A DNA stretch of 64,000 nucleotides from Podarcis bocagei (GCA_964188305.1 OZ076888.1), one strand, 5' to 3'. Counted from the stretch's first letter, positions 19,101 through 64,000 are shown. Made by a program: numbers and translations. Notes: generated by a model not told the origin, from the sequence alone.

Positions 19101-22100
19101 TATCGTCACCTGTTCTATATTGTTACCATTACATTTGGGGGAGGGGGAGCATTATCAGAAAGTAGAGACAAAAGAGTTATGAAAATTAATTGTCATTGAA
19201 GTTGGAATGATCAGTTGTCCGTTTGAGATGCACATCTTACAAAGCACTTTGGATCTCTTCTTCAGTTTACAACTCCTAGTCTGTCTGTACATTCTTGCAT
19301 TACTAAATCAGGATATTAAAATGCAAGTAAGAAAATGGCCTGCGGGGTTCTAGAAGCTATTCTGCTCGCCCAAAATCTCATGTACTCAGAGTAAACCGCT
19401 AGATCCTGGTGTCTGCTGTAGGATATGCCATGCCATCAAAATTTCTTTCTAGCCACTATAGCTAGAGTTGATTCCTGCAATAAAGGGAAAGCTGAGGCTC
19501 TAATTCTGTTGCAGCATCAGACCTTAGGGTTCAAGGTACCTCAGCATCATAGGAGGTGGTAATCCAGTGCATTGTACCGTGTGACATTTGGTGTATGGGT
19601 TGGATCCAGAGAATGAAGGGCCACTTGCACAGGTTGTCTTTTCAGTCTCCCTTCCCCTCCACCCCTTGTGCTCCCCCGAAGCCACTCTGTAGCATGGGAT
19701 AGATAATTTGGGGGGGGGTGTCATACAATGGAAGGGAAAACTGGAAGTATTTGGCAGGGCTGTCTTGTGAGAATGGCAGCACTTTGTTTGAGACAACTTT
19801 GGACAAGCCTGGATTTTTATCAGACGCTTGCTTTCATATTTTGCTGCTTGTCTTTTGAAAATACAAAAACTGAATAATTTATAGTGCCTGATTAAAAAGA
19901 AAATAAATGTTTTCTGAGTCTAATATGAGAAAGAGCACAATTTTGATGAATGAAATTCGTTACAGCTAAACTGCACATTGCATTAAACGTGCAGTTTTGG
20001 GTATGTGTCTCAGGTTTTTTCTTTTTAAATTAGCAGTTACCACAGCTTTTCTAATGGAAGCCACCACCACCCAGCTGCCACGTAGCTACTTTTCCATAGC
20101 AAATTGCAGCTGTGGGGGGGGGGCAGTTTCCTGGGATATTGGTGGAGGGTTAAACATTTCTTTGCAGTTCTGGCCCACTGCCCACCTCAAATCGGCTGCT
20201 ACTTTATATGGAAAATGGAAAAGCAGCACAACAGAAAACTCTGCATCTTAGCCCTTACTGGAGTTGCTGGATTCTTTCTTAAAAATTTAGCTTGACTCTC
20301 TTTTGGTAGCAATTTTGGAAGATGCTGTAAAAATCCAGTCTATTCTTAGCTTGGAATGAACAATAATAAACTTGGAAAATGAGTGACCTTTCAATTTAGT
20401 ATGCATTATGTACAGTAAATTAATTATTTCTTCTCCCTTTACATTTAAGGAGCAATGGCTTTTTTCTTTTTTAATAGGGTCCAGACCATCAGACAGTCCT
20501 GTTTAACCATGGAGCAGTGCAGAATATTGCTCACCTGTTAACTTCTACATCTTATAAAGTAAGGCATTAATATAACCTCTATTCTATAAAGTAAGCCATT
20601 AGTTTGAATCTTGATGCAGCATCATTGCTGGAGTGAAGAAGTAAGTGCAACAGAAGCTGCTGTTTTCGTACAGAAGAGACTGCAAGCATTTCACTTTTAG
20701 CAGTGTGTGTACAGATATGGGGAAACATCACAAAGCATATTTTCCTATAAAGGACTCTTCTGTTGTATACTTGAGAGGCATAAAAAAAGAAGAAAGTGGG
20801 AGAGTAGAAGGGAACATAATGGAAATGGGTAGAGGAAAGTGAAGCTGAAGAAATATCTCTGATGCCATCTTCCTGGCAACATTATTCCTGTCATGAAGTA
20901 GCATGCTTAATCATTACATAATTGTTTTGTTATTCTCCTAATACCAACTACTTGCAACAAATTTAAAATGTAGAAATGTTTAAAATGGCTATAAGCAATT
21001 AACCTTGTAACATTGAAAAGGATGCCAACCTCCAAAAAGAAAGCAAAAATAAGATGAACTACAGTGGTGCCCCGCAAGACGAATGCCTCGCAAGACGAAA
21101 AACCCGCTAGACGAAAGGGTTTTCCGTTTTTCAATGTGCTTCGCAAGACGAATTTCCCTATAGGCTTGCTTCGCAAGACGAAAACATCTTGCGAGTCTTG
21201 CGATTTTTTTTCGCTCCCCCCCCCCTTTTCTAAGCCACTAAGCCGCTAAGCCTTTAATAGCCGCTAAACCGCTAATAGCACTAATCCGCTAAGCCGCTAA
21301 TAGGGTTGCTTCGCAAGACGAAAAAACCGCTAGATGAAGAGACTCGCGGAACGGATTATTTTTGTCTTGCAAGGCACCACTGTACTCAGAACATCACCAA
21401 CAAAGAAACCATGGCAAACCAGCTCATCTTATTCCATCAGGTGCCCTGGGAGAGGATAGTTTTAACAGGCACTGGTAATTAGTGCCTGAAACTTCAAATT
21501 ACAAATTAGTTATATGGCAGAAATGGCCAATGGCAGTATTAAGAAAAGATTCAAACAATTAAATTCTTCAAAGCAAAGTATATACTGAGTTGAGTCATTT
21601 CTACCTTCATTGAATAACATTAACTTTGGCCCAAGACGACTACTTAGTACATAACATGAAGTAATAAAAGAAAAGTAGACCTCTTCAAAGTTAACTTTCC
21701 GAAACATAGAAAATAAAGTTGTACTTTATTGAATTCAAGTACAGTGGTACCTCGGGTTAAGTACTTAATTCGTTCCGGAGGTCCATTCTTAACAAGAAGC
21801 ACCAGTTTAGCTAATGGGGCCTCCTGCTGCCGCTGCGCCACCGGAGCATTATTTCTGTTCTCATCCTGAAGCAAAGTTCTTAACCCGAGGTACTATTTCT
21901 GGGTTAGCGGAGTCTGTAACCTGAAGTGTATGTAACCCGAGGTACCACTGTATATGTTTAATATTTAGGGAAATGGAGGAAGGGGATTGAACCTAAATCC
22001 CCCCCTGCATGCTGCTTGGGAGACTGCGCAGGGAGAACTCTGTATCTGGCATCTCCCAGCACATCATTCTTTAGGAAGGTCTTTATTTGCTGCCCCTGGT

Positions 22101-25100
22101 CAGTTTTAAAATTAACCTGCAAAAATTAGATTAATTACTTAGATAACCATTCGTGATGTTTGAAAACATTCCATGTCATCTAGAATAGTTCTGGATCATT
22201 CTCCTAGCATGGAACCTGGTCCATGTCAGATATTATTGGGGACGTGCTATGATGAAGAGGCCTCTTGGAAGAGTTTGGTTGTTTTGGTGGCAAGTGTAGT
22301 AAAAGACTGGCCTGAGACCCTGAAGAGCCACTCCCAGTCAGAATTGCCAATACTAGGCTAGATGGACAAGTATAAAGGACTTAGTAGAAAGTAGCTTCCT
22401 ATGATCTTTTTGAACCAGCCAAATCGGCTTTATACAAAGTTCATTGGCAGCTCTGATTTTATCTGTAAATTGAGTAAAAGGATGTGAGGACCTGTGCTAC
22501 AAATTGTATAATAAATATTCACTGGATACAAATACTCTGCAAGTTCCAAATATTAAGGCTTCCGTTGCATTCTTTCGGAATGGAACATCCTGTAGTTTTA
22601 ATCAGAAATATGTTCTGTTCAATGCATTTAGACGTTGACTCGTAAAGTTACACTTCCTTAAAAAGGGGGTTTCCTGATAGCTCTGGAAAGTGAAAATCCC
22701 CTGTGTGCTTAGCCTTATATGAATTGGCAGTGAGAAACCTTGTGGGCATTTTATTTTGACTCATTATAAGTAGCCAAAGGTCGTTTCTCAAATTAGGCTG
22801 CACTGAGCCTGTTTACATTATGTGGGAAAGTAACTGCCCAAGTATCAAATGCAATTATGATGCAAGGGAGGGTAGAGAGTCAAAGAAGAAGCTGATTGAC
22901 AGGCCCTTGCAGCATGTCAAATGGAAGGGAGGAGAATGAAGAACGTGGGACTGGCAGTGTTAACTCTTGTTCAACAAAAAGGAGACTTGCTCATTATACT
23001 GATTGGGAAGGAAGCAGGAAGACGTGGGTGAGCACTTATTCTGCACAAACTGGAGTGCATAAAAGTTTCAGAGTGAAGGAGAAGATGATTTCTGCTCCAG
23101 TGATGATTCAGATTCTGTTTTGGCAGGGCTCCCTCTCAGTTTGAGAACTGTGGCTCTAATCACTTAACCCTCCTAGCTTTTTTAAAGGACTTCCTCCGTA
23201 TTTGCACCACATTTTCAGTGGACTTCTGACAAATATTTAAGTGATAGTAGCTTTGACTGACCTTACATAAAACATAAATTTATAAATGTGTGTTTTTATA
23301 CAGGTTCGAATGCAAGCCCTGAAATGCTTTGCAGTTCTAGCCTTTGAAAACCCCCAGGTATCGTTGACTCTCGTAAATGGTAAGCTGAGCACTTTGCTGT
23401 CAATATACAGATTCACAAAGTAATTGCAATTTTGCTAAGTAATTACAATTTAGTTAATTCCTGACACTTCGATTTTCTCATTTTCAGTGTTGGTTGATGG
23501 AGAACTATTACCACAGATTTTTGTGAAGATGTTACAAAGAGACAAGCCTATTGAAATGCAGCTCACATCAGCCAAATGGTAATATTCTTCAGGCTCATGA
23601 AGGAGTAGCACTTTAAATCCGGCTTCCTCAACCTCAGCCCTCCAGATGTTTTCAGACTACAATTCCCATCATCCCTGACCACTGGTCCTGCTAGCTAGGG
23701 ATCATGGGGGTTGTAGGCCAAAAACATTTGGAGGGCCGAGGTTGAGGAAGCCTGCTTTAAATGCTACACATATTTACTTGTCACAATAAATTATGAATAC
23801 ACAACTGTGTCAACCCATACAGCAAATTAGCAAAATCAAAGGGTTGTATTCCACTCTCACCGTGGGACTGCTCAAGAGGGTCCTTCAGGCCTCTGGAATA
23901 GATAAGGGCGTGAAGTAGTGCTGAAGGTGGGCAGGAGAGGAAGGGAAAGACTTACTTTGCAAGCAGAATTATGTTCTGCTCACACAACAGCAGCATTAAA
24001 TACCTGGGCCTGCAGATTGCCCACCTAATGTGAAGGTTGCAGATGTTGCTTGTTGTCTAGATAGCCTGGTAGGAGTTGGTGATCTTGGTGTATGTTGGCA
24101 CAATGACATGGGCAAATGTAGTTATGAGGCCCAGGAAGTGAACTTTAGATTGCTAGGTAGGATGCTGATGGTAGTTTTTTCTGAAATGCTCCTGGATCCA
24201 CACACAGGTGCAATTTTTCTCCCTCTCATAACATTAGAACTCGGTGACATCTAGTGAAGCTGAATGTTGTAAAGAGTCAGGACCAACAAAACAAAGTACT
24301 TCTTCATAGAGTGCATAGTTAAACTATGTAGTTGTGTCCGCTTGATCACTCACACTACAGGGGCTCTTGCTCAGTGGTAGAGTAGAAGATTTACATGAAG
24401 AAAGTTCCAGCTTCAGTAACTGGCATCTACAGTTAAAGGGGGTAATGGGAGTGGGTTGTCTCTGCCTAAAGCTCTGGTGGCCCATTGGGAGTCAGAATAG
24501 GCTGTACGGGCTAGATGAACAAATTCTCTGACCTGTTATAAGGCAGCTTCCTGCGTTCCACTTTAGTATAGCTTTCTTACCCACCAGCTTATATCTGCTC
24601 TAACAAGGGTCATGATACTCTTCTTCTGTTTTCCAGAGCTTTACTATTTCATTTGTTTTTAAAACGTGTCCCCTTAACTGCTGAATGGTTCATCCAGCAA
24701 TGAGACAAAACAAAATCTAAAATATACTTGATACTTCTGACAATATGGGTAAATTAGGTCTGTAGTTCTGTCTAAGGTAGTGTAAGCCTTCTAATGATTT
24801 TTTAAAAAATCAATTCTCTGTATATACTACATGTGTCAGTTAATCAGCATTTTGATGTTTCATTGTAGCCTTACTTACATGTGCAGAGCTGGAGCAATTC
24901 GCACTGATGATACCTGCATTGTGTTAAAGGTAAGTTGAGTAAGCATATAGCTGTACTTAGACAAATTGTGTTTTGCACCAGGGTCTCGCCTAGGAATTTA
25001 GGAAGCACTAATAAAGCTGTTCCTACTTGGTGGTGATTAGCAGCTGCTAGTTTTTGGTAGTATGGTTATGAAATATACACCCTCTTTGCTCTTGACTTCT

Positions 25101-52300: not shown

Positions 52301-55300
52301 AAGAGTCAGACAAGACAAAAAAAACATGGGAGGAGTAGGTGAACAGTAATATTCTCCTAGTAGGTGGGAGGCTAAATTGCTATGAACTGGTTGTCCCAAC
52401 CATTTACATAAGAAAGACATAGACTGCAGGTTTCACTTAGAGTTGTATTTATGTATCTAAATTAGCTATATAATATCCTGCCTTTCAGGATACAAACTCT
52501 CCCAATAAACATGCTCTTTGCTGCTACTTTCAGCTACTTTGCTCACATAACTCACCTTTTCTATTTCTTCTAGAGTGAAAAACTCTCCAGGGGCCTTTAC
52601 TAGCTGATGAACGTCTGCTCCTAAAATAGGTAATGGATTACAAATCATGTTACTTGAACTTTGTTAAAGGAGAAGCAAAGGACAAAACTGTTCCTAAGGC
52701 TCCTGGGAAGCACCAACATTCATTCCAATTAGATAATAATAAAGCCCTTCTAGGGGAAGGTAGGATATAATGTTCTATATTTATTATTATTATATTTATA
52801 TCCCACCTTTCTGCCAAGGAGCTCAAAGTGATGTACATGGTTTCCCTCACTGGTACTTCAATTTTATCCTCACAATGACCCTCTGAAGTAGGTTAGGTTG
52901 GCAGATAGTGACTGACTCAAAATCACTCATAGAGTGTAATTTCACTGGGTTTCAGTTTCCTTGGATTTAAAAGAAGAGGGCCTGACTAAGCAGCTTTTAG
53001 AGGCTTCACTTGACTAGTTTGGATTTTGCTGATCCCTGAAAAGGAATGAGACGTGTGCTAATAAGGACTGAGTATGCCTCAGTGCACCCTGAAACTATAT
53101 TTGAAAAGTGGTTTGGACCAGGAGAAATTACAATCTAGACACAGGTTGAAGACTCTGGATTGTTGGTTCAGCTGACTGGTTATGACAGTGAGCTCCTTTG
53201 ACATTTTCATTTGATGGCATTATGACGTAAGGTGATTTGAGAGGTGTATGGTCCTGCCCATCTGTCAAAACTGACCTGCAGGGAATGAATCAGCTCTTGA
53301 CCAGACCCTTGGTGTGAGAAAGGTTCGCTACCCCTGATTTGGCTCAACGAAGTCCACCAAAATAGCCAACACATGAGAATGCAAGTTTTAGGTTTAGGGG
53401 TGGTGGACTGATGGGAAGACAGCAAATCACTTCTCACTTGGTAGCAGTTCACAACAAGTTATGTTAAGAGAGCCACAGGCGCTTCTGTTTGAAATGGGTC
53501 ATGTATTAACAAGTACATAGCAGCACCTTTGCCAAAGTCCATTCAAGCTCCCTGGGAACCTCCAGAGTATATGATGATTAAACTTGGAGCAGGAAAGAAG
53601 CGTTTGATTATTAAAAACAAATTGGGAGGAATTCAACATAGTGTTAAGCTACAGTCCCATAGTGGTGTACAAGTTGCAATAGCAGAGAAGGTTCTTGTGG
53701 CTTGGTTGCACAGCAGATTGCAGTAGCCCCAATACATCCTGTTGCACTGGATTTCATATTATACAGCCATTATTCTCACCCTTACATGAGTGGTGGTGGT
53801 TGGTGTTTCAAATTTTGCATTCAGTATGGTTTTACAACTCTTAAGTTACTTTGAAACATTTTATGCAGTAAGCAATGAATAAATGAAATAAATAATACTA
53901 TAAAGGAATGCTAGGTTTGAAGGAAAAGGTTCCAAAAAACATACCAAGTCTTTTGGCAATGCCAGTTGCACGTTCACCCCAAAATCCATTCATAGCTATG
54001 AGCACTTTGTCTCCCTGCTCCACCATGTTCAAGAAGGCTGCTTCCATGGCACAATGGCCGGTGCCACTGACAGCCAATGTGAGAGGGTTCTGTGTCTGAA
54101 ATGCATACTGTATTCCAAGCTTGATCTCATCCATTATCTGAGGGCAACAGAGAAGATAATCAGTGTTCAAAGAAACTTTCCAAAGGCTGGCAGTGCACGT
54201 GTATTTATGTCTGTGGATTCTGACAGTGGCATTCATAGGAGGAAGAGATAACAGTGTGGCTCCCATTAAAAGTTTCTATACATTTTGATGGACAAACGAC
54301 AACAGCCGGAAAAGGCTGAACAAAGTCCAAAATGCTGTTACGGAAGAGAATACTCCCACAGTAGAGTTACTCAGCCACAGTTGAGATTCTGCTCTTGCTT
54401 CTTTATTTCTTTGCATCATATAATACATTGATTACTATCACTTTATGAACAGCCATGCTCCTGTGTAAGTGGAAATGTTGAATCCTAAAGCCTCACACAC
54501 CCTGGTGAGAATTAAGTAGGTTTTCTGATAGAGCAGATTTCAAGCATCATAAACACAGAAGGCGTCTGTATTTATATACAAGTCTGCTCTCATGGGACCT
54601 CAAAATGCAGATCAGCGTGGAACTCCCTATTTCTTAACATGGCTCTTAGCCAGATTATACACAGAAATTACATGCTTCCAATTTAGTGATATATTTGCCT
54701 GCTACTAAGCCTGAGATCACTCCCATGAATAGTTAGCAATCCTTTCTGCGTAATGGATCTCAAAGGAATATCTGTCTTCCTGACTGACATACAGAAGAAT
54801 AAGCACCATGAGATCTAAATAGCAGAAGTTTGTCTAGATTTAAAGAGTTGGGTTTTCAAAGTTTTATATTTGCTTAGTGAATCTAGATCAGAGGAAAGCC
54901 TGAGACTCTCATGAGCTCAGTGGAATCAAGTTCTTAAAAATGGGGAAATAACCAGAAATAATAGTCCCATCACAGAGGAAGAAAATCATGCTTCTGGTTA
55001 TCAAGAAATTCTGTGGCTAAATAATAATGATTTTCCATAAATCTAGATTGTATTAGTTAAGAACATTACTTTTGATTAAAAAAATTTAATCCATAGACTA
55101 ATGAATAATTAGTCAGGGTGATACTTGAAAGCTGGAAAAGCATTAAGTAGAAGCTGAAGTAGGAGCACACAAGGAATTAGGTAGGATTTTATTTCTTACC
55201 TGGATCATCTCTTTGTGGACATGTCCTATGAGCTGTCGACAGCCTGCAGACAAGATCCGGGGAGGGCAATTGGAGGGCCCAGGGCCCAGCAATAACCTGT

Positions 55301-55466
55301 CTGGAACAGACAGTGGCTGTAGCAGAGGTGCTGGAGGTGGCAGAGATAGGTTTTGAGAAGCCATGGTGCGGCAACACTGAGTTAAAACCAGAGGCCGCCG
55401 AACAGGAGTCCAACCTGCTGCTTGCAGCACTAGGAACACACTGCTCACCCCTGACCTTAAATACAT
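46260..55466 (-). CDS. AGXT: Alanine:glyoxylate / serine:pyruvate aminotransferase, complete, 11 exons (426-aa long form; 392 aa from second ATG at 55364)
   Basis: complement(join(55200-55466,53945-54137,52556-52620,52175-52275,51502-51572,50286-50370,49135-49230,48583-48652,47514-47609,46754-46882,46260-46367)). All GT-AG; intron positions match human AGXT; motifs [26 protein letters not shown] (PLP lysine), YHHT and LRIG intact; ends NKL*. Confidence 0.95.
46754..46882 (-). CDS. AGXT: AGXT exon 10 ([20 protein letters not shown]...GGLGASAGK)
   Basis: 129 bp; ttcag|GAT ... AAG|gtagat. Confidence 0.95.
47514..47609 (-). CDS. AGXT: AGXT exon 9 ([32 protein letters not shown])
   Basis: 96 bp; tacag|GGG ... 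CCG|gtaaga. Confidence 0.95.
48583..48652 (-). CDS. AGXT: AGXT exon 8 ([23 protein letters not shown])
   Basis: 70 bp; tgcag|G ... AAG|gtcagt. Confidence 0.95.
49135..49230 (-). CDS. AGXT: AGXT exon 7 ([31 protein letters not shown])
   Basis: 96 bp; gtcag|G ... AA|gtgaga. Confidence 0.95.
50286..50370 (-). CDS. AGXT: AGXT exon 6 ([27 protein letters not shown])
   Basis: 85 bp; PLP-binding Lys codon at 50339-50341. Confidence 0.95.
51068..51495 (-). mobile_element. 5'-truncated CR1 LINE in AGXT intron 5
   Basis: ORF 51145..51531 encodes a CR1 ORF2 C-terminus ([14 protein letters not shown]-type motif ... WNLLP); (ATTCTATG)n tail. Confidence 0.92.
51502..51572 (-). CDS. AGXT: AGXT exon 5 ([23 protein letters not shown])
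   Basis: 71 bp; tttag|A ... G|gtgagc. Confidence 0.94.
52175..52275 (-). CDS. AGXT: AGXT exon 4 ([33 protein letters not shown])
   Basis: 101 bp; cctag|GGT ... AG|gtcagt. Confidence 0.94.
52556..52620 (-). CDS. AGXT: AGXT exon 3 ([21 protein letters not shown])
   Basis: 65 bp; tttag|GA ... AAG|gtgagt. Confidence 0.94.
53945..54137 (-). CDS. AGXT: AGXT exon 2 ([15 protein letters not shown]...AKRL)
   Basis: 193 bp; ctcag|ATA ... G|gtatgt. Confidence 0.95.
55200..55466 (-). CDS. AGXT: AGXT exon 1 (presequence + [15 protein letters not shown]...KEMIQ)
   Basis: ATG1 at 55466, ATG2 at 55364 (gcaccATGG); CAG|gtaaga. Confidence 0.92.
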
Positions 55467-59237: not shown

Positions 59238-59399
59238 TTAGTAGTAGGGTGATGAGACTCTTGTAGGCATCTTTCTCTCTGTCACAAGCAGGTCCCCTTC
59301 TGGCTTGGGTGCAAATTTCCCATTCAGATAAACCAGCCTGCCACGTACAAGAGTGGCAAAGACCTTACCATAAAGCTGGAAACCCAAGTATGGGGTTAG
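59238..59399 (-). CDS. ALLN: ALLN-like terminal exon (LTPYLGFQLYGKVFATLVRGRLVYLNGKFAPKPEGDLLVTERKMPTRVSSPYY*)
   Basis: tttag|CTA ACC CCA TAC ... TAC TAC TAA; minus-strand AATAAA candidates near 58881 and 58762-58776. Confidence 0.9.
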   Translation of the reverse strand, partial: LTPYLGFQLYGKVFATLVRGRLVYLNGKFAPKPEGDLLVTERKMPTRVSSPYY

Positions 59400-62300
59400 C
59401 TAAAGGAGAAAGCAGGGAGAGAGAGAAAAGCAAGGATAAATAGAATGCAGAATCAAAGGTCTTTGGGTAAATGTGTTTTTGTTTATGGTGGTTCTGATCT
59501 GTCCATAGCAGATATGCACAAGGCAAAATAGATGCAGTGGTGCAGACAGCTCTAAGTGAACAACAAAGACTAGAGGTGAATTGAGGCCTTATGAACCCCT
59601 CCATCCAGTTTACCTTTCTCAAGCTCCATGCCCAAAGAGTAGGTATCCTTAAAGGGCCAACTCCCTAACCTGGAGCACTTCTTTTCTCTTCTGTGGCTTG
59701 CTGGCCTGGTGAATTCTGTTGGGTAGGCCTGTAGAGCAAGAAGTACTTGACTCTTCAGGCAAATGGGACTTGGCGAAAGGCATCTGTGAGGGTTCTGGCT
59801 CAGGTTCTGTAGGTTCCACTAGCCTCAGGTTCACTTCCAGGGAACCTGGTGGTGCAGCAGTCCTGGCCTCAGCCAGCTCATCCTCCTCTGACTCTGAGCT
59901 TGAGGTTAGGGCCATGAAACTAATAAATAATCTAAGATACCAGATGTGAAAATGATTTAGACTCCTTCAGCATAGACATGCGTCCTGTTGAGTGCCTACT
60001 AGGACCAGTCCTTATTTAAATTTGTATGAGGCAGATCCTCTGACCCAGTAACTTCTGACCTGGAAAAGATAAAGACTGAATAGCCCATAAATGTCAAGGC
60101 TGCAAAAAGGCAAGGAATGTTGAAAGCCGAGGGCTGTGCTCACCCCTCCTGGTGGTATTTTGTTTGTTGGTTTTTGCCTGCTAAGCAAAGTGATAGATGG
60201 AGGTGAAGATTACTAAACAGTCAGTTCATTATAGCCTCTACCACCACAGAAATGACACTTGGGATGTCCCATTTGCTTAACAGTAAAGCCTGCCCTAAGC
60301 AGAGGCCAAAAATGTAATGAATTATACAGTAAATTACAGTAAGGTGTTTTGAGGGTGGGATGGCGGGGGGCAGTAATAGGAACACTGGGAGAATGCAGAA
60401 AACATGAGCCTTCCCATACCTTATCCTTGTGATGAATTATGTTTTTATTCACCTAAGAGAGAAAGAAGGAGACAAAATAATTATAATACAGATTAGTTTG
60501 GGATATGTTGCTTACTAAGGATAATGCATACAACCTAATATTATTGTCCCTGTGTTGTATCAAAGAGAATGGTAATATCAGAACTGGCACTTTCCAGATC
60601 ATCAATTATAAAAATTTCAAAGCATAGAAAGGTTAGTTTCACACACTCCCATTTACTCTGCACCCAGTGAGCTACCACCGCTGGCTTGGGAAGTGGTATA
60701 TACATGATGTTCGCTACAATCAATATCTATCTTGTATCTCTCTAGCTAATAACCATAACCATAATAAGTGTTTTGATGTATCTTTGATCCAAATTGAGAA
60801 AAATAATGCCCCAGCTGACACCCTAACTTTGTGTCAAGATTACTCTCTTGCTAAGGTCGTTGAAACAACCATTCTGCTATGCCTTTTTATACTGGAAACA
60901 TTCAAGACCAAAGTGTTTTAACTGATTTTAACATTTTATTTTTACATTGTTTTATCTTACCTGGGACCTTATGGTGAAGTACGGATAAGAAATCCAAAGA
61001 ACAACAACTACACTTTGGACTTCTGTCTCATAAAACTGGCACATTTAATTCTTCACTTGGTATTAGGTCACTTCACTGTTTTCTGTAAGGGCTTTGTTTG
61101 TTATAACTCTTTATTTTATTAGATTTGCTATATCCTGTTTTTTGCTCTATATCAGACTCCCAAGGTGATTCACAAAATTTTAAAAATGACCTATATCCTC
61201 TCCCATCCTTACCTCAAACTCCTTTTCTGGATCCCAGATCACCAGGTCTGCATCCATCCCAGGGCCAAGTGATCCTTTACGGTCTTCCAGCCTGCTCAGA
61301 ATGGCAGGATTTTTGCACATCAGTTGCACTAGGTCATGGAAGGAGAACCCTCTGGATTTTGCAGAAGTCCAGAAGAGAGGGAGACCTATGAATTTTCCAG
61401 TCACAATTAGTAGAGGAATTTATTGTTCAGAAGATTGTTCTTCCCTGGTTTCTTCTTAAAGTATATCACTTGATGCCACTCAAAGAGAAGACTTGAACAT
61501 TTGGTAAAGGGGTGAGCAGTCCTTTCCTGCGAGGGCCACATGTGGCAATATGTTGGGTCACCCATAAACACATTCACTGACATTCATTCACACTCATTCA
61601 AACATAAACACATTGAATTGCACACACTATTGTGTGATTGTATTGGGGGCGGGGAGCACCAGGGAAGTAAATTCATGCTATTTTCTTCAGAATTTTTGTA
61701 TGTAAACATATGCAAATTTAATCAATGAATTGGCTACTCTGTGAAAAGTGATCTGATCAATTAAGATTTCTTTGTCTGAAAGCCATAACCTACCCAAAAG
61801 AAAATTATTCTGCATTCAATGGAACTTATTTTGAAGTAACTATGCTTGGGATCCCATCTTTGCTTTATTGAACATGCTTTTTAAAACAAATTTAAATAGA
61901 GGAGGGAGAAAGGTTGTTTTCTGCTGCTCCAGAGAAGCGGACACGGAGCAATGGATCCAAACTACAAGAAAGAAGATTCCATCTAAACATTAGGAAGAAC
62001 TTCCTGACAGTAAGAGCTGTTTGACAGTGGAATTTGCTGCCAAGGAGTGTGGTGGAGTCTCCTTCTTTGGAGGTCTTTAAGCAGAGGCTTGACAACCATA
62101 TGTCAGGAGTGCTCTGCTGGTGTTTCCTGCTTGGCAGGGGGTTGGACTTGATGGCCCTTGTGGTCTCTTCCAACTCTATGATTCTATGATTCTATGAAAT
62201 TACTTTAATTTACATAGTGAAAAACTAAAGTATTTGTAATTTAAATGAAATGGGCATTTTGAATGGGGTATTGGTTGGCTTTGCTTGAGGACACTAAGGG

Positions 62301-62775
62301 CACCTGGAACAACAGGATGACAGGTCATGCTTTGGGAAGGGCCATAGTTCAATGGTGGATCACATGCTTTGCGTCCTGAAGGTTACTGTTTTAATTCCAG
62401 ACACCTCCAGTTAGCAGGTAATGGGAAAGACCTCTGAGGACCCACATTCTGGAGAGATTAGCAGGTAATGGGAAAGACCTCTGAGGACCCACATTCTGGA
62501 GAGATACTGCCTGTCAGTGTAGTATATTCTTGAGATGATATGGGGATAGCATCCTTTCCATTTTTAGCAGTACATGCTCATTGGATGAAGATAAGAAAAA
62601 GAACAGCATATATAAAATAGTTCATAAACACATTACCAAACTGTAGTGAAGCAATCCCTGCTGGGGCCTTGAGGAAGTCTCCATTGTTCAAATCTTTCAA
62701 GTCTCGGGAGCAAGGAGTATGGGCTGAGACAACCATGTCTATCTCTCCCACTTCCAAAGCTGCCCAAAGCTGCTC
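59238..62775 (-). CDS. ALLN: Allantoinase-like protein (cyclic amidohydrolase superfamily), last four coding exons; catalytic Asp substituted
   Basis: complement(join(62637-62775,61213-61385,60420-60452,59238-59399)). GT-AG, phases consistent, no internal stops: EQLWAALEVGEIDMVVSAHTPC...IASLQFGLPLFWTSAKSRGFS...RKGSLGPGMDADLVIWDPEKEFEVNKNIIHHKDKLTPYLGFQLYGKVFATLVRGRLVY...PYY*. The SLQFGLPLFWT and HHKxKLTPYLG motifs point to vertebrate allantoinase rather than DPYS/CRMP. Confidence 0.88.
60420..60452 (-). CDS. ALLN: ALLN-like 33-bp exon (VNKNIIHHKDK)
   Basis: cttag|GTG ... AAG|gtatgg. Confidence 0.85.
61213..61385 (-). CDS. ALLN: ALLN-like exon (LPLFWTSAKSRGFS...GMDADLVIWDPEKEFE)
   Basis: catag|GT ... 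GAG|gtaagg; ORF 61180..61404. Confidence 0.92.
61896..62197 (+). mobile_element. 5'-truncated CR1 LINE in an ALLN intron
   Basis: Highly similar to the 51068-51495 copy in opposite orientation; (ATTCTATG)n tail. Confidence 0.92.
62411..62504 (+). repeat. Perfect 47-bp tandem duplication inside an old tRNA-type SINE
   Basis: TTAGCAGGTAATGGGAAAGACCTCTGAGGACCCACATTCTGGAGAGA x2. Confidence 0.9.
62637..62775 (-). CDS. ALLN: ALLN-like exon (EQLWAALEVGEIDMVVSAHTPCSRDLKDLNNGDFLKAPAGIASLQF)
   Basis: tccag|GAG ... TTT G|gtaatg; 139 bp. Confidence 0.9.
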
Positions 62776-64000
62776 CTGGAGATATGAGAGTAAGAGTTTA
62801 TGCCAAGGAAATACTTTTGTAGTTCTCTTTAGTAAGGTGAAGCCATTGAATGATCAAGGAAGGGTCACATCCCTTTTTGGAGCCAGTGGCACATTTGCAA
62901 ACTGGATACACAGCTGTGGGCACCACAGCCAAGCACACTTCACAACCTGTTCTACTAGCGACAGGAGCATGCTTCTTTCAACACTAATTTCAGTGGAGCA
63001 GGAAAGGGGACCCTGTAGGCACCAGGAAAGGCCTCTGTGGGCATATGTGTGCCCACAAGCAACACATTGGTGACCCCTGCATTAATCTATTGATGCATAC
63101 AGAGGTAATGCAGTTTGTACCAAAGATCCAGGATCAGCTTTCAACTCAAAAATAGACCAACCAAAGCAACAGTGACAGAGCTGCCACTGAAAGTTAGCTC
63201 TCCTTAGAATGGAAAGGAAATTTCTTTGACTAAAGATCCACATTTAGAAACAGATAAGGATAGTGTGGCCACGCTGATTCTTCTGACCATGCTGATTCTT
63301 CTTCTTCACCACCACCACCACCACCAAGTCCTTCTGGAATGTTTTAAGGAACTGGGAACAGGAGCATTGCTTTGCAATGATTCCACTCCTGGATTTTGCA
63401 TCCTGGCCCAATAAAGAAGCACAATAACACTTAATTCACTTGTACTATGTATTGTGCAGGAACTGACATTTTTGCTTTCTAGTGCCCTTATTTCTTTAGG
63501 AAGGCCTGCCTCATACTTCGGGCAAATTATTAGGGCCAATAAACCATAGTTTATTAAACTGAGAATACACCCATGTGTTTGCCCCCCCCCTTGCCTGGAT
63601 CCAGTGTTTTTATTATGGCTATTTTAAACCAAAATTTCCAGTTACATCTGTTTTACCTCAACTTACCAAATAGGATGCAAAACCAACATCTTATCCTGGT
63701 ATTTGTAGTCTGAGATTACATGATAGTTTCCTAGTTAAGATGTAACAGGAAACTGTGGTTTGAATTAACCATGATGGAAGCACTGAAGCCAGAGCATCAT
63801 GGGAAGAAGAGAGGGACAAGGAGGTAGCATATAGGCTGATTCTTGTGCTCAAGCATGGTTTATTAAGCTGAGTTCGTTAAACAATGTTCGTTAGAGAACA
63901 ATGAACTTACATTAAGCACTAAACTACCATTTCTTTGAACATGTCTGGATGTGACACAAATGCACTTTGCACTGTCAATTTTAACATATTTTATTTGTTT

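Follow-up and report, generated by a model that had tools for sequence, protein, structure and literature searches.

Reptile allantoinase genes without their catalytic aspartate: intact orthologs that are probably pseudoenzymes

Metal-dependent allantoinase (Enzyme Commission (EC) number 3.5.2.5), represented by AllB of E. coli (PDB 3E74 and 8HFD) and by ALLN of vertebrates, depends on six essential residues of a binuclear metal centre, namely H59, H61, the carbamylated K146, H186, H242 and D315 (PMC9863593). The sauropsid gene considered here is a direct ortholog of this enzyme, and was encountered in a stretch of 64,000 nucleotides from the lizard Podarcis bocagei (GCA_964188305.1, OZ076888.1), hereafter the window, in which ALLN lies on the minus strand; all coordinates below are positions in this stretch. 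An earlier note on the same DNA had proposed that the gene is intact but carries Ala in place of the metal-ligating Asp, and that it is kept for a non-hydrolytic use parallel to that of the CRMP/DPYSL proteins. Compared with the functional vertebrate enzyme, D315, S317, W332, R67 and the residue after the HxH motif are replaced in all sauropsids, and in squamates the carbamylated Lys146 is additionally replaced by Gln (18 of 18) and H242 by Asn (15 of 18). With the loss of these defining catalytic residues, the canonical hydrolytic mechanism would therefore be unavailable in sauropsid ALLN.

The best known proteins of comparable kind are the CRMP/DPYSL family, with which reptile ALLN has in common the cyclic-amidohydrolase fold (template modelling (TM) score about 0.80 for the predicted model) and the replacement of metal ligands in a protein that is still conserved. 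CRMP-1 has Gln165 at the position of the carbamylated Lys, where squamate ALLN likewise has Gln, whereas at the Asp position CRMP-1 has Gly332 and sauropsid ALLN has Ala (PMC2999344). The Ala that had been proposed at this position of CRMP2 (in a GSAH motif) was thus not confirmed, CRMP-1 being the one compared, and the real parallel is the change of the carbamylated Lys to Gln. The CRMPs act as non-catalytic scaffolds, and no neuronal or cytoskeletal role is implied by this likeness for ALLN. The two also differ in origin: the CRMPs arose by duplication of dihydropyrimidinase, whose active form persists, whereas in reptiles the single-copy ALLN was itself converted, with no active copy seen among the reptile matches. 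A second group of comparable proteins comprises inactive dihydroorotase-like partners, such as PyrC′, which associates with aspartate transcarbamoylase in Pseudomonas, and the dead dihydroorotase-like domain of fungal CAD. These have lost their metal ligands and are kept to hold a multi-enzyme complex together; the same mechanism is proposed for reptile ALLN, although its partner is a guess. The gene is therefore ALLN by descent and yet lacks the features of a functional allantoinase, and it probably resembles the CRMPs in how it works.

Intact downstream genes of purine catabolism were reportedly noticed in a lizard by Keebaugh and Thomas in 2010, who are said to have proposed new functions for them. 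Today automatic annotation in UniProt and NCBI applies the name allantoinase (EC 3.5.2.5) to a protein of about 40 reptile species. In the literature, Alln has been treated as lost in reptiles, while the persistence of Allc in lineages whose pathway ends at urate has been taken to imply that it does something else (PMC10120013). Neither the annotation as "allantoinase" nor the published "lost" fits what is described below, since the gene is present and under selection but appears catalytically disarmed; in other words, where PMC10120013 counts a gene loss, there would be functional loss with structural retention. The EC assignment, judged by the residues present, is almost certainly wrong, in squamates at least. 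No description of the replacement of catalytic residues in reptile ALLN was found in the literature searched, although Keebaugh and Thomas (2010) may have noted the residue, and a 2026 review (PMC13751858) covers allantoinase and pseudoenzymes but not the reptile case; the replacement thus appears to be undescribed.

The central change lies in coding exon 9 of 12 of the ALLN ortholog (62637..62775, minus strand), which is bounded by an AG acceptor and a GT donor and was placed by means of the exon map of Lacerta agilis. Read from 62775 to 62637, this exon encodes 46 residues, corresponding to residues 311-357 of the 478-residue lacertid protein, and contains the strand-8 motif as I-D-M-V-V-S-A-H-T-P-C together with the next active-site loop, in which K-A-P-A-G-I follows. 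A Pfam search with these 46 residues alone gave no match. Against the PDB, phmmer pairs V-S-A-H-T-P-C with V-S-D-H-S-P-C of the E. coli allantoinase 3e74, where sequence index 335 is the native Asp315 (the chain bears a 20-residue tag). According to this alignment and the codon table, the Ala codon GCC (62722..62724, minus strand) takes the place of Asp315, which serves as metal ligand and proton shuttle, and the Thr codon ACT (62716..62718, minus strand) that of the pocket residue Ser317, the S of D-H-S-P. The exon translation and the alignment to 3e74 agree on this point, so that the reading of GCC at 62724-62722 as Ala at the metal-ligand Asp has held. A second change in the same exon, not stressed in the earlier note, turns the canonical A-W-G-G into A-P-A-G (codons 62664-62659), with Pro-Ala (CCA GCA, 62659..62664, minus strand) in place of Trp332-Gly333.

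The replacement is not a peculiarity of one lizard. In an alignment of 28 sauropsid proteins, 14 canonical vertebrate proteins and one non-vertebrate protein, S-A-H stands in 28 of 28 sauropsid sequences (20 squamates from geckos to snakes, the tuatara, two crocodilians and five turtles including a pleurodire), and S-D-H-S-P-C in 14 of 14 canonical ones (shark, fish, coelacanth, lungfish, amphibians, platypus and marsupials). Depending on the lineage, the Ala codon is GCC, GCT or GCA among the 11 sequences with DNA in the codon table; koala has GAC. The question whether the change is fixed in a clade can thus be answered in the affirmative, but the clade is larger than had been supposed: the earlier framing, which tied the change to the uricotely of squamates, was not borne out, as turtles, crocodilians and the tuatara carry the same Ala. 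Because the residue is common to these groups, the change dates to the stem of living reptiles, and on this distribution the replacement of Asp by Ala is best placed as a single event in the common ancestor of living non-avian reptiles. Among the best 120 matches of a turtle query, which extend down to about 59% identity, there was no ALLN from birds or caenophidian snakes; this is absence from a list of matches and not the outcome of a dedicated test, and it suggests that ALLN was lost in both groups. Pythons and boas have ALLN, with a more diverged pocket (S-A-H-R).

For the remainder of the active site, the alignment to 3e74 was used to locate the essential residues in the vertebrate proteins. 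The Phrynosoma and Sceloporus models, which contain mispredicted stretches, were excluded from the tree and from the column statistics, leaving 26 sauropsid models of which 18 are from squamates; in addition, the tuatara and Salvator models look imperfect near His186, and odd residues there are not trustworthy. There are 169 columns conserved at 95% or more in the canonical vertebrates, and the canonical residue is gone from all 26 sauropsid models in just five of them, all within pocket motifs: the Asn after HxH (S63 in E. coli), R67, D315, S317 and W332. At the S63 position the vertebrate Asn is replaced by Cys (22 of 26), at R67 the Arg by His (19 of 26), and W332 is mostly replaced by Gln, while S317, an invariant Ser in the canonical vertebrates, is T, N, V or R in sauropsids. 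No motif column of the sauropsid alignment contains a new acidic residue.

More specifically, the lineages differ in how much of the metal centre they have retained. Turtles and crocodilians, in which Ala stands for D315 as it does in squamates, keep the canonical Lys at K146 and His at H242, and have therefore lost one of the six metal-centre residues in addition to pocket residues. In squamates K146 is Gln and H242 is mostly Asn, the latter His being kept in most geckos as well as in the tuatara. The N94 position, canonically Asn, is still Asn in both crocodilians and the pleurodire, Ser in four turtles, and Tyr, His or Asp in squamates. H59 and H186 remain His in turtles and crocodilians and mostly so in squamates, and H61 is lost in Zootoca and Gekko. 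For the lacertids, to which the window belongs, the residues outside the window were read from orthologs: the carbamylated Lys146 is Gln in all four of them, His242 is Asn, and the N94 position is Tyr; the HxH motif (H59, H61) and H186 are present in the Lacerta and Podarcis orthologs, and Zootoca has H-V-Q; the Cys found after HxH in other reptiles has changed to Tyr, and the His at the R67 position to Gln. The window itself supplies Thr for S317 and Pro for W332. The other ligands, which the earlier note had left to be checked, therefore gave a divided answer in lacertids, with HxH and His186 kept but the carbamylated Lys and His242 replaced. Lizards, including the clade of the window, have in this way lost three of the six metal-centre residues as well as pocket residues. 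Read in this order, living lineages keep successive stages of a dismantling, in which the Asp went first and the Lys and His followed in squamates.

The pocket has not only changed but has become variable. Nine positions were defined a priori, namely the six metal ligands and N94, S317 and W332, the latter three being named in the docking table of PMC9863593. All nine are invariant in the canonical vertebrates, and in sauropsids they have a mean entropy of 0.90 bits, compared with 0.33 bits for all canonical-invariant columns (permutation p = 0.002). The variability of W70, N94, S317, W332 and G333 among sauropsids is in the 91st-100th percentile, and the sole pocket positions that are fixed are Ala315, His316 and His59.

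That such a protein is still ALLN is indicated by several comparisons. A search of 1.84 billion cluster representatives with exon 10 matched vertebrate allantoinases, and queries with frog and turtle proteins retrieved full-length proteins named "allantoinase, mitochondrial-like" from many reptiles; the results of the frog query included no second, canonical ALLN copy from any reptile. The 168 residues encoded in the window are 97.6-98.2% identical to residues 311-478 of the 478-residue proteins of the lacertids compared (Lacerta agilis, Zootoca vivipara and three Podarcis species, including Podarcis muralis), and sauropsid ALLN is 58-63% identical to ALLN of amphibians, platypus and marsupials. 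In a sequence search of the PDB, allantoinases score best (E-values of 1e-64 to 1e-65), with CRMPs at 1e-27 to 1e-31. A maximum-likelihood tree unites the sauropsids (support 100) and places them as sister to mammals, and the branching order within them is largely that of the species; the window protein nests inside vertebrate ALLN and is thus not a CRMP/DPYSL member by descent. By these sequence comparisons the gene is an ALLN ortholog. An old paralog, which was considered in its place, is ruled out by the species-like gene tree.

The reading frame is intact throughout. The four exons in the window have canonical splice sites at each and, when joined, give 168 codons and a stop without any internal stop or frameshift, as the earlier note had described. 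For eight reptiles and the koala, nine species in all, the annotated protein agrees with the genomic DNA at every residue, and therefore hidden frameshift corrections are not involved; all eight reptile genes have 12 exons with no residue missing, and the koala gene has 11. Since the Lacerta and Zootoca proteins map exactly in 12 exons, the upstream exons, on which the earlier proposal depended, are intact in the orthologs. Pairwise ratios of nonsynonymous to synonymous substitution rates (dN/dS), calculated by three methods in four independent clades, range from 0.13 to 0.41: 0.13-0.21 for the window and Lacerta, 0.24-0.35 for Lacerta and Zootoca, 0.21-0.34 for two Anolis species, 0.28-0.41 for Alligator and Crocodylus, and 0.23-0.33 for Chrysemys and Gopherus. 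Tree-wide, our own one-ratio codon model of the Goldman-Yang type (F3x4), applied to ten sauropsid sequences, gives an omega of 0.27, and the fit with omega set to 1 is worse by 170 log-likelihood units (likelihood-ratio statistic 340.7, p = 4e-76). As had been anticipated for a gene with a retained function, both values are well below 1. With separate values, omega is 0.245 in squamates and 0.329 in turtles plus crocodilians (p = 0.052); a relaxation of constraint in squamates after the loss of Lys and His, which was considered, is not supported by this comparison. In the protein tree, sauropsid tips lie 0.24-0.40 from the amniote node; for monotremes and marsupials, which have canonical ALLN, the corresponding root-to-tip distance is 0.31-0.32, and the identity between Lacerta and Chrysemys (73%) is close to that between koala and platypus (72%). 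Measured by such distances, the rate of the sauropsid protein is equal to that of the active mammalian orthologs.

For structure prediction the ortholog of Lacerta agilis was used, whose identity to the 168 residues of the window is 97.6%. AlphaFold2 produced a confident allantoinase-like structure (predicted local distance difference test (pLDDT) score 86.3, predicted TM score (pTM) 0.89), whose best structural neighbours in the PDB are three solved allantoinases (TM 0.84-0.92). The TIM-barrel plus beta-sandwich fold of allantoinase is accordingly present in the predicted model. As for expression, one contig of 2143 nucleotides from run SRR6291277 encodes a gecko ortholog over its entire length of 478 residues; it has no introns and is interpreted as a spliced mRNA.

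Without the Asp, and in squamates also without the carbamylated Lys, the protein would be unable to hydrolyse allantoin by the known binuclear-metal route, which, given the mechanism of the cyclic amidohydrolases, would make it a pseudoenzyme. We judge it quite probable that the sequence findings (loss of the Asp in place, loss of the pocket, and a gene retained under selection) and this pseudoenzyme interpretation hold jointly, and the core of the earlier proposal, that an intact gene is kept for some non-hydrolytic use in parallel to the CRMPs, gains support from the intact upstream exons, the clade-fixed Ala and the dN/dS values. As the former pocket is among the most variable parts of a protein that is otherwise conserved, the retained function is likely to depend on the fold, the oligomer or the surface. 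If the protein is a pseudoenzyme, it may have been kept as a non-catalytic scaffold or regulatory subunit in the manner of CRMP/DPYSL, a mechanism for which we regard the balance as even. A candidate partner would be allantoicase (ALLC): the title of Takada and Noguchi 1983, as cited in PMC7401351, speaks of an association of allantoinase and allantoicase in amphibian liver, and Allc is reported to be kept in reptiles (PMC10120013). Even granted the pseudoenzyme, this partnership is tentative and on the whole unlikely. Similarly doubtful is the fuller scenario, in which, once the reptile ancestor no longer degraded allantoin, ALLN itself, and not a duplicate of it, became a non-catalytic subunit working with the likewise orphaned ALLC, thereby acquiring a new reptile-specific role that later became dispensable in birds and advanced snakes. 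If it were true, two relics of the ureide pathway would form a new functional module, and the change from Asp to Ala would mark the time at which sauropsid purine metabolism came to end at urate.

Several observations weigh against this interpretation or parts of it. An omega of 0.27 indicates moderate constraint only, and it is from protein distances that constraint is judged to equal that of the active orthologs. The enrichment of changed columns within 5 residues of the ligands is marginal (p = 0.057) in what is a cruder test than the entropy comparison. Placental mammals are reported to have ALLC but not ALLN, and therefore ALLC does not need ALLN as a partner. Turtles and crocodilians keep five of the six metal ligands and could bind metal and do some chemistry; H59, H186 and H316 are still near-invariant in sauropsids; and the new Cys and His beside HxH (in 22 and 19 of the 26 models) could point to a site that was remodelled rather than abandoned. 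It is on these last observations, namely the invariant H59, the nearly invariant H186 and H316, the new Cys and His, and the K146 and H242 retained in turtles and crocodilians, together with a protein constraint as strong as in active orthologs, that the case for a new enzyme would be built, in which the remodelled pocket catalyses another reaction, for example at a mononuclear His site or through the new Cys. Lacertids, however, have changed that Cys to Tyr and that His to Gln, Zootoca and Gekko have lost H61, and W70, N94, S317, W332 and G333 belong to the most variable decile of positions noted above; no pocket composition is common to all lineages beyond Ala315 and His316, and we consider a new enzyme improbable. 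Somewhat less probable still is a ligand sensor that binds allantoin or a related ureide or hydantoin without hydrolysis and couples the metabolite level to stability or signalling. For the pseudoenzyme DPYSL2, binding of dihydrouracil to the vestigial pocket has been reported (bioRxiv 10.64898/2026.06.14.731825), and the overall pocket architecture and fold are kept in the predicted model of reptile ALLN, but the expected substrate contacts R67, N94, S317 and W332 were replaced and then diversified between lineages, a pattern that one would not anticipate if a ligand site were being conserved.

The two simplest explanations fare worse. That the protein is still an allantoinase, working through a compensating residue or a metal-independent route, would agree with its name in the databases and with a sequence and fold closest to allantoinases; given that lacertids have replaced three of the six essential metal-centre residues (PMC9863593) and pocket residues besides, and that no motif column offers a new acidic residue, this is very improbable. 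The opposite possibility, that the gene is decaying or an artefact (a young unitary pseudogene, an assembly or allele error, or a partial duplicate), could draw on the mere four exons in the window, on a 130-residue Podarcis muralis record beginning with M-V-V-S-A-H, and on the literature that counts Alln as lost in reptiles (PMC10120013), but it has next to nothing left in its favour, so far as sequences can decide the matter, once each form is confronted with the data. A unitary pseudogene is ruled out by the lack of stops, frameshifts and lost splice sites and by an omega of 0.27, which rejects neutrality (p = 4e-76). An assembly error or rare allele at the Ala codon is ruled out, since 28 further sauropsid sequences have this Ala and three different codons are used for it among the 11 sequences with DNA. 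A partial duplicate, as suggested by the short record, is ruled out by the colinearity of the window with the full-length Lacerta agilis gene from intron 8 to the downstream AGXT, and is further contradicted by Podarcis muralis itself, which has a 478-residue model and for which the 130-residue record is an isoform; full 478-residue proteins exist in Lacerta, Zootoca and three Podarcis species, with exact 12-exon maps in the first two.

If reptile ALLN is a pseudoenzyme, as we hold to be probable, the shared set of substitutions would date the end of allantoin hydrolysis to before the split of lepidosaurs from turtles plus archosaurs. This split is roughly 280 million years old, and the result consequently bears on the timing of urate-terminal nitrogen metabolism in amniotes. 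It would also represent a transition from enzyme to pseudoenzyme without gene duplication, with a stepwise loss of ligands whose intermediate states are alive and therefore suited to reversion and rescue work. The questions raised are what job a dead allantoinase of about 300 million years performs, and why birds could do without ALLN.

The remaining features of the window complete the picture of the locus. Upstream of exon 9, part of intron 8 (62776..64000, minus strand) was identified by a 90% alignment to intron 8 of Lacerta agilis; specifically, window 64000..62458 aligns at 90% to 21892..23421 of the Lacerta agilis locus (L001), within intron 8. Exon 8 would be expected about 415 nucleotides past position 64000, which would leave the eight upstream coding exons outside the window; only four exons are visible because the upstream ones lie beyond its end. 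In intron 9 there is a tandem duplication of about 47 bp (unit starting ctctccagaatgtggg; window 62400-62510, minus strand), at which the Lacerta agilis alignment is interrupted. Downstream follow, each on the minus strand and placed by the exon map, coding exon 10 (61213..61385), which encodes the conserved D-A-D-L-V-I-W-D-P region of the amidohydrolase fold and whose region matches the Pfam families Amidohydro_1 and Amidohydro_3; coding exon 11 with 11 residues (60420..60452), for which the splice sites were also used; and coding exon 12 (59238..59399), which ends in the tail S-P-Y-Y and the stop TAA at 59240-59238. An alternative terminal exon in intron 11 (60094..60180, minus strand), read by eye, matches the tail of Podarcis muralis XP_028572495.1, the 130-residue isoform mentioned above, which ends in this alternative last exon. 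This isoform would be 53 residues short at the C-terminal end of the fold, and its transcript is probably minor or non-productive.

Exon 1 of AGXT lies at about 55143-55466 (minus strand), with its start codon near 55364, about 3.9 kb downstream of the ALLN stop and on the same strand. The arrangement matches that in Lacerta agilis, where the 12 coding exons of ALLN span 16.3 kb and AGXT follows 4.1 kb downstream on the same strand. Fused ALLN-AGXT gene models (P0341, P0343) imply that the two genes are also neighbours in Alligator, and in Chrysemys (L006) AGXT is absent from within 10 kb of ALLN. The C-terminal tail P-Y-Y (window 59241-59252, minus strand; S-P-Y-Y in most reptiles) is found in lungfish, frogs, all squamates, crocodilians and turtles, is missing in marsupials, fish and the tuatara model, and may serve tetrapod ALLN as a short conserved motif for interaction or sorting. 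Finally, intron 11 contains an open reading frame for 88 residues (59649-59915, minus strand), acidic and rich in Ser, Glu and Pro, which may be a fragment of a repeat or transposon.

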